DNA of 64,000 nucleotides, from positions 62,001 to 126,000 of the IMG/VR virus record IMGVR_UViG_3300032322_002561; one strand, given 5' to 3'. Position numbers and translations under genes: made by a program. Of the stretch, positions 26,016-62,253 are shown in pieces (positions within the stretch are counted from its first letter, which is position 1; every line of letters starts with the position of its first letter). The notes beneath the pieces are model-generated. The model ran no database searches, had not been told where the DNA came from, and was given only the letters and a program-made list of their open reading frames with translations.

Positions 26016-26089
26016 TGGTTGCGGGACCAGGAATCGAACCTGGGACTCGAGCTTATGAGACTCGCGTTTTACCGCTTCACTATCCCGCG
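26016..26089 (-). tRNA. tRNA-Met(CAU), initiator-like
   Basis: CGCGGGA/TCCCGCA with C1:A72 mismatch; CT-CAT-AA loop. Confidence 0.9.
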
Positions 26090-26992: not shown

Positions 26993-27026
26993 AAAAAACC
27001 CCGGAGTGTTTAATTCCAGGGTCTTT
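26993..27026 (-). terminator. Terminator/attenuator hairpin ahead of the tRNA operon
   Basis: AAAGACCCTGGA...TCCGGGGTTTTTT. Confidence 0.7.
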
Positions 27027-27048
27027 GAATATTGTATGATATTTTATA

Positions 27049-27150
27049 CTATTCACTGCCCTGAATCGGATCTTCACAAATTGCCCATAGCGCCACACTC
27101 CCGCTGAAATTGGGTTGTGGTGCAAGATGTGTTAATTTGTGATTCAACAT
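27049..27150 (-). CDS. Putative leader peptide (33 aa)
   Basis: ATG 6 nt after TATAAT; followed by a terminator. Confidence 0.45.
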   Translation of the reverse strand: MLNHKLTHLAPQPNFSGSVALWAICEDPIQGSE

Positions 27151-27156
27151 AATAGT

Positions 27157-27185
27157 ATTATACGAGAATATTTATACCAGGTCAA
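27157..27185 (-). promoter_or_regulatory. Sigma70 promoter with an embedded TATAAATA late-type motif
   Basis: TTGACC-TGGTATAAATATTCTCG-TATAAT. Confidence 0.8.
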
Positions 27186-27199
27186 CCAATTTGGTCAAC

Positions 27200-27586: not shown

Positions 27587-28327
27587 TTAATTAAAAGTCT
27601 TTGTCAAGCCTACTACCACTGCATTTTTGTAGAGCTTTTGACCGCCTACAGTGTTTGCAGTTTCAAAGGTTGATGTGGTGCCAGTATTGGTAAAATACTT
27701 GACGCTCAAGTCATATGCCTTGGGTAGAGAATAAACAAATCCAGCATTGATGTCGTTGTAATCATATGCCGAGCTGTTGGCCACATTGGTACGACCATAG
27801 TGAGCAACCACAGCTAGATTTTTAACAACAGGAACTGGTAGTTTGCCATCCACTTGTGTATAGTTTGTGCCACGAGCATTGGCTGTACCGAAGTAACCGT
27901 TGCCCAAGGTTTGGCTATACTTGGCAGAAATAATGTCTTTGTAACCTACGCCGACAAAACCTTCATAGGTGTCAAAGTTGCTGCCAGTGGCTGCAGAAGT
28001 GGTTGCACGTGGATAGAAATAGTTGTAGCTACCGATGTCAATCGAGATGCCCTTGAAAATTTCTTTCTTGTAACCAGCATAGAGGTCGCTTTCTACACCT
28101 GCACCGTTGGTATAAACATTGCTGGAAACACTGCTGTTCCAGTTACCAACATAGAAGCCACTCTTGTGTGCATAGTCGATGCCGCCCTGAACTGCAGGAG
28201 CATTTTGGGTTTGGCTAACACCGCGGAAACGGTAGTCGCTGGTCAAACCTAAATTGCCGGTGAGTTGAGCTTGAGCCGAGGCAACAAAGCCAGCGGACAA
28301 GGCTAATGCGATTAATAGTTTTTTCAT
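27587..28327 (-). CDS. TorF/Gcw_chp-family putative outer-membrane porin
   Basis: Signal peptide; SDYRFRGVSQT..PAVQGGID..GFYVGNWNS, ESDLYAGY; near-terminal Phe. Confidence 0.85.
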   Translation of the reverse strand: MKKLLIALALSAGFVASAQAQLTGNLGLTSDYRFRGVSQTQNAPAVQGGIDYAHKSGFYVGNWNSSVSSNVYTNGAGVESDLYAGYKKEIFKGISIDIGSYNYFYPRATTSAATGSNFDTYEGFVGVGYKDIISAKYSQTLGNGYFGTANARGTNYTQVDGKLPVPVVKNLAVVAHYGRTNVANSSAYDYNDINAGFVYSLPKAYDLSVKYFTNTGTTSTFETANTVGGQKLYKNAVVVGLTKTFN

Positions 28328-28430: not shown

Positions 28431-28790
28431 GACTATTTTGGGTAACAAGGCATAGTTGCCCCGGAGATCATGCCGCTAAGGCAAAGACCTCGTCGTTGGC
28501 TGCGTTTGCAGTTATCGTTGTGCTTCTACAACCGGGTGTCCCCAGTCCTAACGGGTTTCGCATTCCCGTGTAGATCCTGTCCATACTTGTTGCCACGTCG
28601 AAACTGTGTCATCCCCACCAAAAAGACCTAGCAATTCTGGATCAATGTGCCAGCTCCAGCTCATGCTGTAATTCCACAAATTCAAGGGTGGAAAACTATC
28701 GGTCCATTGCTCCATAAAAGTCCTTTTGGTGGAGATGCCGGGTTCTGCCCCCGGGTCCGCAACACCTTTCTGTCAAGGCATTAAACTACA
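28431..28790 (-). ncRNA. ssrA: Circularly permuted (two-piece) tmRNA
   Basis: Acceptor piece ending CATCTCC-A-CCA (3' end at 28727) precedes the GGGGATG 5' end (28616); G3:U70 pair; tag ANAANDEVFALAA-stop at 28509..28468; outer ends approximate. Confidence 0.92.
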
Positions 28791-29219: not shown

Positions 29220-29390
29220 TTAATTATAACCTTTTATGTTTTTGCCGTCAATCTTGGGATTACCTTTTGCTGCTACATTTTCTAATTGACGTGCTCGATC
29301 TCGTTCGGGCGGTAGCGGGCCGCAACCCAACCTGTCCCACTCTGAATCAGAGTAGTAGTATTTTTCTACGGGTTTTTTGACCTGTTCCAT
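29220..29390 (-). CDS. Small hypothetical protein (56 aa)
   Basis: MEQVKKPVEKYYYSDSEWDRLGCGPLP...; TAAATA upstream. Confidence 0.55.
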   Translation of the reverse strand: MEQVKKPVEKYYYSDSEWDRLGCGPLPPERDRARQLENVAAKGNPKIDGKNIKGYN

Positions 29391-29406: not shown

Positions 29407-29481
29407 TGGTGGGCCTTGAAAGAATTGAACTTTCACTCCATCGATTATGAGTCGATTGCTTTACCATTAAGCTAAAGGCCC
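29407..29481 (-). tRNA. tRNA-Ile2(CAU) (lysidine type); elongator Met not excluded
   Basis: GGGCCTT acceptor stem; ATCGA-CT-CAT-AA-TCGAT; encoded CCA. Confidence 0.88.
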
Positions 29482-61972: not shown

Positions 61973-62253
61973 TATAGTACTACCAATTCGCCCAGATGAT
62001 TCACTGTGGCATCTCCGTATTCTACACGATAATTTTCAACCTGTAGACTGGCCTGGCGATCCAACAGTTCATATCGTATTGTGTACTTACCGGGCCAGGC
62101 TTCAATTTGAAAGCTCTCTTGCAGATAGACATTTTGCCAGGTCCAGGTGCGCTCGGTAAACAATTCGTCATCAACGAATGCACGGTACTGTGGCGGTGTC
62201 ACAGTCCAGGCACAGTGTACATCGCAAACTATCTTGACGAACTTTTTTGTCAT
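61972..62253 (-). CDS. Hypothetical protein
   Basis: TAAATA-N5-ATG start. Confidence 0.65.
   Translation of the reverse strand: MTKKFVKIVCDVHCAWTVTPPQYRAFVDDELFTERTWTWQNVYLQESFQIEAWPGKYTIRYELLDRQASLQVENYRVEYGDATVNHLGELVVL

Follow-up and report, generated by a model that had tools for sequence, protein, structure and literature searches.

A putative leader-peptide attenuator upstream of the tRNA gene cluster of a large freshwater phage

Leader-peptide transcription attenuators are known from the amino-acid operons of Escherichia coli (trpL, hisL, leuL, thrL, ilvL and pheL), in which a promoter-proximal short ORF precedes an intrinsic terminator, an antiterminator shares the 5' strand of the terminator, and a ribosome reaching the end of the ORF allows termination. 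Short ORFs that begin at the 5' AUG of the transcript, and on which the progress of the ribosome sets the expression of downstream genes, have been described in attenuators of Deinococcus deserti (PMC4007540) and mycobacteria (polycysteine LL-sORFs; bioRxiv 10.1101/834739), the mycobacterial ones acting by the unmasking of a ribosome-binding site rather than through a terminator. T-box riboswitches also tie a terminator/antiterminator switch to tRNA status, but they bind uncharged tRNA directly via a specifier loop and the T-box bulge, are not translated, and control synthetase and amino-acid genes. The reasons why phages carry tRNA genes are still debated, with codon compensation, survival of host tRNA decay, and escape from tRNA-cleaving defences having been proposed (PMC10264068, PMC11555353, PMC11025619), and almost nothing is known about how the expression of these genes is controlled. 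No attenuator located before a phage tRNA cluster was found in our literature searches.

Here we analysed a 64,000-nucleotide stretch (the window; positions 62,001 to 126,000 of IMG/VR record IMGVR_UViG_3300032322_002561) of a 236-kb viral contig, which is estimated to be 68% complete. Related contigs reach 320-364 kb and come from lake and freshwater metagenomes, and the contig is therefore derived from an uncultured freshwater jumbo phage. No relative of the locus was found in the GenBank phage collection by blastn. All 11 tRNA genes of the contig and a permuted tmRNA lie on the minus strand of the window. In a first-pass annotation of the sequence, a strong promoter, a leaderless 33-codon ORF, a terminator located directly ahead of the tRNA cluster, and a possible pairing between CAGGG and the 5' arm of the terminator were noted, and it was inferred that ribosome position on the leader sets readthrough into the tRNA genes. 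All four elements were confirmed on the minus strand (Table 1), with the exception that the terminator does not directly precede the tRNAs in this window; it is followed by a gene for a 58-aa protein with its own ribosome-binding site and then by 340 nt of non-coding RNA. Comparative evidence supports the structural premises of the attenuator interpretation, as described below.

Table 1. Features of the putative attenuator locus and its surroundings (coordinates are those of the window).
Feature	Position	Strand	Sequence or remarks
Permuted (two-piece) tmRNA	28468-28790	-	tag ANAANDEVFALAA; promoter-like site at 28828-28799
Gene for a 246-aa protein	27587-28327	-	signal peptide; Pfam Gcw_chp
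Stop codon of upstream 75-aa gene	27232-27230	-	TAG
Terminator hairpin of upstream 75-aa gene	27223-27201	-	AAAAGGCUC-UUAG-GAGCCUUUU
Additional TTGACC	27193-27198	-	13 nt upstream of the -35 hexamer
Sigma-70-type promoter	27185-27157	-	-35 TTGACC (27185-27180); 17-nt spacer with invariant ATAAATA (27168-27174); -10 TATAAT (27162-27157)
Predicted transcription start	27150	-	on the A of the ATG
Leader ORF	27150-27049	-	33 codons plus TAG (27051-27049); peptide consensus MLNRKVT[HY]LVPQPN[FL]xGxxxLWxIC[EK], followed by a variable tail
P1, predicted hairpin inside the ORF	27142-27074	-	core UCRCA:UGYGA plus CCC:GGG
Antiterminator 5' strand	27065-27059	-	UUCAGGG (CAGGG at 27063-27059); ends 7 nt upstream of the stop codon
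P2, apical hairpin of the antiterminator	27055-27026	-	5' strand UGAAUAGUAU, containing the stop codon
Intrinsic terminator	27025-26988	-	ACCCUGGA (27022-27015) pairs with UCCGGGGU (27005-26998) across a 9-nt loop; U-tract (U6-A-U4) at 26998-26988
Shared strand (terminator 5' arm and antiterminator)	27021-27015	-	CCCUGGA (CCCUG at 27021-27017)
Ribosome-binding site of 58-aa gene	26985-26980	-	AGAGGA
58-aa gene	26974-26798	-	helical protein of unknown function
Non-coding spacer	26797-26459	-	conserved structured RNA at about 26790-26690
Proximal part of the tRNA cluster	26458-25021	-	Ser(GCU), Glu(UUC), initiator-like Met(CAU), Cys(GCA), Trp(CCA) and Pro(UGG), with small ORFs between them; four more tRNAs follow, down to 20083
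Initiator-like tRNA-Met(CAU)	26016-26089	-	C1xA72 mismatch
Second tRNA-Met	29407-29481		normal G1-C72 pair

The promoter matches the sigma-70 consensus at 11 of 12 positions. It is one of 18 TTGAC-N16-18-TATAAT sites in the 236-kb genome (window sites at 29251, 27185, 21820, 13173, 7017 and 60288), all of which are on the minus (coding) strand, often in the context GGTTGACCAAAAA, and most of which are followed by a ribosome-binding site and a gene. The ATG of the leader ORF lies 7 nt after the -10 hexamer and lacks a Shine-Dalgarno sequence, and the predicted transcript therefore has no 5' leader. At two more sites (positions 160629 and 189277 of the contig), an ATG lies 5-6 nt after the -10 hexamer, and these are possible further leaderless starts. 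The additional TTGACC upstream of the -35 hexamer, which is also present in two homologous loci (L006 and L009; homologous loci are designated by L numbers), and the invariant ATAAATA in the spacer could together form an overlapping promoter that starts about 14 nt upstream of the AUG and would give a leadered, poorly translated transcript. The terminator hairpin of the upstream 75-aa gene insulates the unit from upstream transcription.

The whole unit is conserved at 75-83% identity in nine loci (L002-L010) that were found through the 58-aa protein, and in these loci both promoter hexamers are invariant and similarity to the window begins just upstream of the -35 hexamer. These loci were joined by matches to a 22-nt pattern in the viral and metagenome collections, giving 32 distinct leaders in total. 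Because 23 of the 32 were found with this pattern, which covers the -10 hexamer and the first codons, invariance in that region is partly by construction, although the protein-anchored loci are free of this bias. No further copy of the leader was detected by nhmmer elsewhere in the genome or in 80 loci of relatives that share the upstream 75-aa gene but lack the 58-aa gene.

The leader ORF evolves as a protein-coding sequence. It is open for 32-33 codons in 31 of the 32 homologues, and column entropy summed by codon position is 11.1, 10.6 and 20.1, the third position thus showing about twice the entropy of the other two. The mean pN/pS is 0.45 in this frame against 0.75 and 1.14 in the other two frames, which carry stops in 32/32 and 26/32 sequences. 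Synonymous variation is plain at Leu9, Gln12, Asn14, Phe15, Cys25 and Glu26, whereas some codons (TTG2, AAT3, CCA11, CTA21, TGG22 and ATT24) are invariant at all three positions, indicating that RNA-level or codon-level constraints act as well. The exceptional homologue is L108 (2147-2324), in which the frame runs on for 50 codons through P2 into the terminator. This would reverse the predicted logic if it is real, but the contig is only 2.5 kb and an assembly indel or sequencing error is possible. Notably, two separate lineages (L008 and the clade L091/L095/L100/L126) carry a 1-nt insertion after codon 27 that changes the last 5-6 residues completely, yet both stop at a TGA that starts 3 nt upstream of the usual TAG and both retain UUCAGGG. 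This argues that the place where the ribosome stops is selected, not the C-terminal peptide.

Both alternative helices are supported by compensatory changes. The terminator has a hairpin energy of -15.4 kcal/mol when the A:U extension is included and was missed by a simple terminator scan only because the loop limit of the scan is 8 nt. Among the homologues, 98.6% of its alignment cells are paired and three pairs are changed on both sides (0 of 500 shuffles). For the antiterminator, UUCAGGG with CCCUGGA, extended to eight pairs in the alignment, 90.2% of cells are paired and four pairs are changed on both sides (17 such cells), a level reached by 0 of 500 shuffles, and sliding the partner by one column drops pairing to 57-70%. 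RNAalifold recovered this helix by itself on the sub-region. The three strands also change together: where the shared strand reads CCUCG instead of CCCUG, the upstream strand reads CGAGG instead of CAGGG (or a wobble-compatible UGGGG in L099) and the 3' arm reads CGAGG instead of CGGGG; L009 has CCCCG with GGGGG. On a maximum-likelihood tree built without these columns, the CCUCG state needs at least three changes. The change from CAGGG to CGAGG replaces the encoded Gln by Arg, so pairing was kept at the expense of the peptide. Relatedness temper these numbers, as does recombination, which could have moved the three covarying strands together, but base pairing of one strand with two alternative partners is the simplest reading. 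In contrast, P1, which is possibly a pause element and is present in the MFE fold, is only weakly supported, with 91.6% of cells paired against 90.7% in shuffles (reached by 14 of 500 shuffles).

The leader RNA of the window folds with z = -3.26 against shuffles. RNAalifold on the full MAFFT alignment missed P2 because of alignment gaps, and per-sequence folds were used instead. In all 32 homologues, the segment from the upstream antiterminator strand to the shared strand folds as one extended hairpin (-11 to -23 kcal/mol) with different apical sequences. Before the 3' arm of the terminator is transcribed, this hairpin is part of the MFE structure in 32 of 32 homologues, whereas the full RNA prefers the terminator in 29 of 32, by 0-10 kcal/mol; the pair thus behaves as a kinetic switch. 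When nucleotides -12 to +15 around the P site were masked for a ribosome at the stop codon, the terminator was the MFE structure in 31 of 31 homologues, and with the ribosome placed at Trp22 or Cys25 the antiterminator was the MFE structure in 32 and 31 of 32, respectively. With Cys25 in the A site, the last covered nucleotide is the one just before the upstream strand.

The 58-aa gene, the first gene that would be controlled, follows every leader and is conserved at 68-88% amino-acid identity in nine viral contigs. No informative match to the 33-aa, 58-aa or 75-aa products was found in Pfam or PHROGs, and the ESM Atlas yielded only hypothetical viral clusters for the 58-aa protein. The tRNA genes follow on the same strand in 27 of the 28 distinct loci that have at least 440 nt of downstream sequence. 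In 12 of these, tRNA-Met begins 7 nt after the stop codon of the 58-aa gene, which leaves no room for a promoter of its own. In the window, no sigma-70-like site was detected on the minus strand between 27157 and 25636, the latter hit lying inside tRNA-Cys/Trp, although phage-specific promoter types cannot be excluded. The first ~100 nt of the spacer after the 58-aa gene is 76-89% identical in at least 14 related loci, and its hairpins keep pairing through compensatory changes (for example, UGUGUUA/UAACACA becomes UGUGUCG/CGACACA). This structured RNA has no Rfam family and is absent from the homologues in which tRNA-Met follows the gene after 7 nt.

Taken together, the locus is probably a ribosome-dependent transcription attenuator, an explanation that we favour with moderate confidence and that is inferred from comparative sequence analysis and thermodynamic folding alone; none of the 20 sequencing runs containing the locus or parts of it is recorded as RNA. 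In this model, host RNA polymerase starts at or next to the A of the AUG, and a ribosome must load directly on the 5' AUG. As the RNA emerges, UUCAGGG, P2 and CCCUGGA fold into one extended hairpin that ties up the 5' arm of the terminator. Because the stop codon lies inside this hairpin, a ribosome that translates all 33 codons in step with the polymerase would unwind and cover the antiterminator, CCCUGGA would be freed to pair with UCCGGGGU, and transcription would end near 26993. If the ribosome is absent, late, or stalled at or before codon 25, the antiterminator would persist and the polymerase would read on into the 58-aa gene, the structured RNA and the tRNA genes, so that phage tRNA output would rise when translation is impaired. 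The transcription start, the translation of the ORF, the kinetic order of folding and the direction of the logic are inferred, and the ribosome might be slowed by initiation on the leaderless RNA, by single sensor codons or by nascent-peptide arrest. Such a switch, encoded in about 200 nt, would mean that the phage monitors translation capacity and tops it up on demand, and would show that leader-peptide attenuation exists in viruses, that it works with an RNA lacking a 5' leader, and that it can work without an amino-acid codon run.

Compared with the E. coli amino-acid operon leaders, the unit is phage-encoded and precedes tRNA genes rather than genes for biosynthetic enzymes, its predicted RNA has no 5' leader and no ribosome-binding site, and its peptide is longer and conserved. 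It contains no run of codons for any one amino acid, the usual sensor in this class, and no supported 1:2 helix that would sequester the antiterminator strand in the absence of translation, since P1 does not include that strand. The untranslated default is therefore predicted to be readthrough rather than termination, which depends on assumed folding kinetics; the full RNA favours the terminator thermodynamically. Rfam searches at gathering score and at E <= 5 gave no family for the leader and no T-box match; the His_leader, Thr_leader and Phe_leader families were not matched at their gathering thresholds, with scores of 20.9 bits against 49 for His_leader and 17.9 against 55 for Thr_leader. 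In relation to the leaderless short-ORF attenuators of Deinococcus and mycobacteria, the ORF is not enriched in a sensed amino acid but has a single Trp and a single Cys codon, and it is followed by an intrinsic terminator and tRNA genes.

Other explanations were considered less likely. The same switch may be operated by the nascent peptide, the conserved 26-residue N-terminal part (with PQPN about 11-14 residues before LWxIC) acting as an arrest peptide that stalls the ribosome near codon 25 in response to a small molecule or factor, as TnaC, SecM or SpeFL do. Nine residues, including P11, N14, L21, W22, I24 and C25, are invariant, amino-acid conservation over 26 residues is more than a passive spacer peptide needs, which speaks against the favoured model, the C-terminal tail is free to vary and even to change frame, and the spacing of the conserved blocks may resemble that of known arrest peptides. 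However, no sequence similarity to any known arrest peptide or family was detected, nothing indicates a ligand, and the invariance of CCA, CTA and ATT at synonymous sites points to RNA-level or codon-level constraint instead, so this possibility remains doubtful. It is also conceivable, though somewhat less likely still, that the switch is set without translation by a protein, a small ligand or a tRNA that binds P1 or the antiterminator hairpin, with the ORF encoding a small protein with an unrelated job, or that the terminated ~160-nt RNA itself acts in trans as a small or dual-function RNA, as terminated attenuator RNAs and their leader peptides can do in the case of rnTrpL and peTrpL (PMC6614838, PMC7298713). 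The stability of the leader RNA and the stretches invariant even at synonymous sites are compatible with this idea, but P1 shows almost no covariation, no Rfam riboswitch, T-box or sRNA family matches, and neither the coding signature nor the retention of the stop codon inside the antiterminator after frameshifts is explained. The least likely alternative is that there is no regulation, and that a small phage gene has a leaky terminator of its own next to a hairpin that serves in processing or stability, for example as an RNase III site for maturing the tRNA precursor. Phage tRNA precursors need nucleolytic processing and the hairpin is long (about 20 pairs with internal loops), but the hairpin and the terminator are mutually exclusive because they share one strand, and the concerted change of all three strands is not expected of a plain processing stem placed next to a plain terminator.

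A further possibility, which we consider unlikely but not excluded, is that the leader directly gauges the very tRNAs it controls. In most homologues, the core of the downstream cluster is Met(CAU)-Cys(GCA)-Trp(CCA), and the Met tRNA has an initiator-type acceptor stem (C1xA72, G2:C71, C3:G70, A73) in the window and in 20 of 21 other homologues, although it lacks the three G:C pairs of the initiator anticodon stem. Loading of a ribosome on an RNA without a 5' leader depends on initiator tRNA, and the single invariant Trp (22) and Cys (25) codons sit at the last positions where a stalled ribosome leaves the antiterminator free. A shortage of initiator, Trp or Cys tRNA, which could come from host shutoff or host tRNA-cleaving defence nucleases, would then switch on transcription of replacement tRNAs in a feedback loop. 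The correlation is suggestive but statistically weak: leader codons read by the ten downstream tRNAs number 14 of 33 against 26.4% genome-wide (binomial p = 0.034), and this test was chosen after the fact and is too weak to carry a claim.

The permuted tmRNA, which scores 107.7 bits against Rfam tmRNA_permuted, is conserved in related contigs and sits upstream of the attenuator unit. Between the tmRNA and the tRNA cluster lies the gene for a 246-aa protein that matches Pfam Gcw_chp (E = 1e-45), a bacterial family of unknown function; this protein, possibly an outer-membrane porin, is an unusual cargo at this position. In the downstream clusters of two relatives, L004 (4028-4120) and L098 (470-562), ARAGORN calls a tRNA-Ser with anticodon ACU (A34), which is unusual for bacteria and phages.
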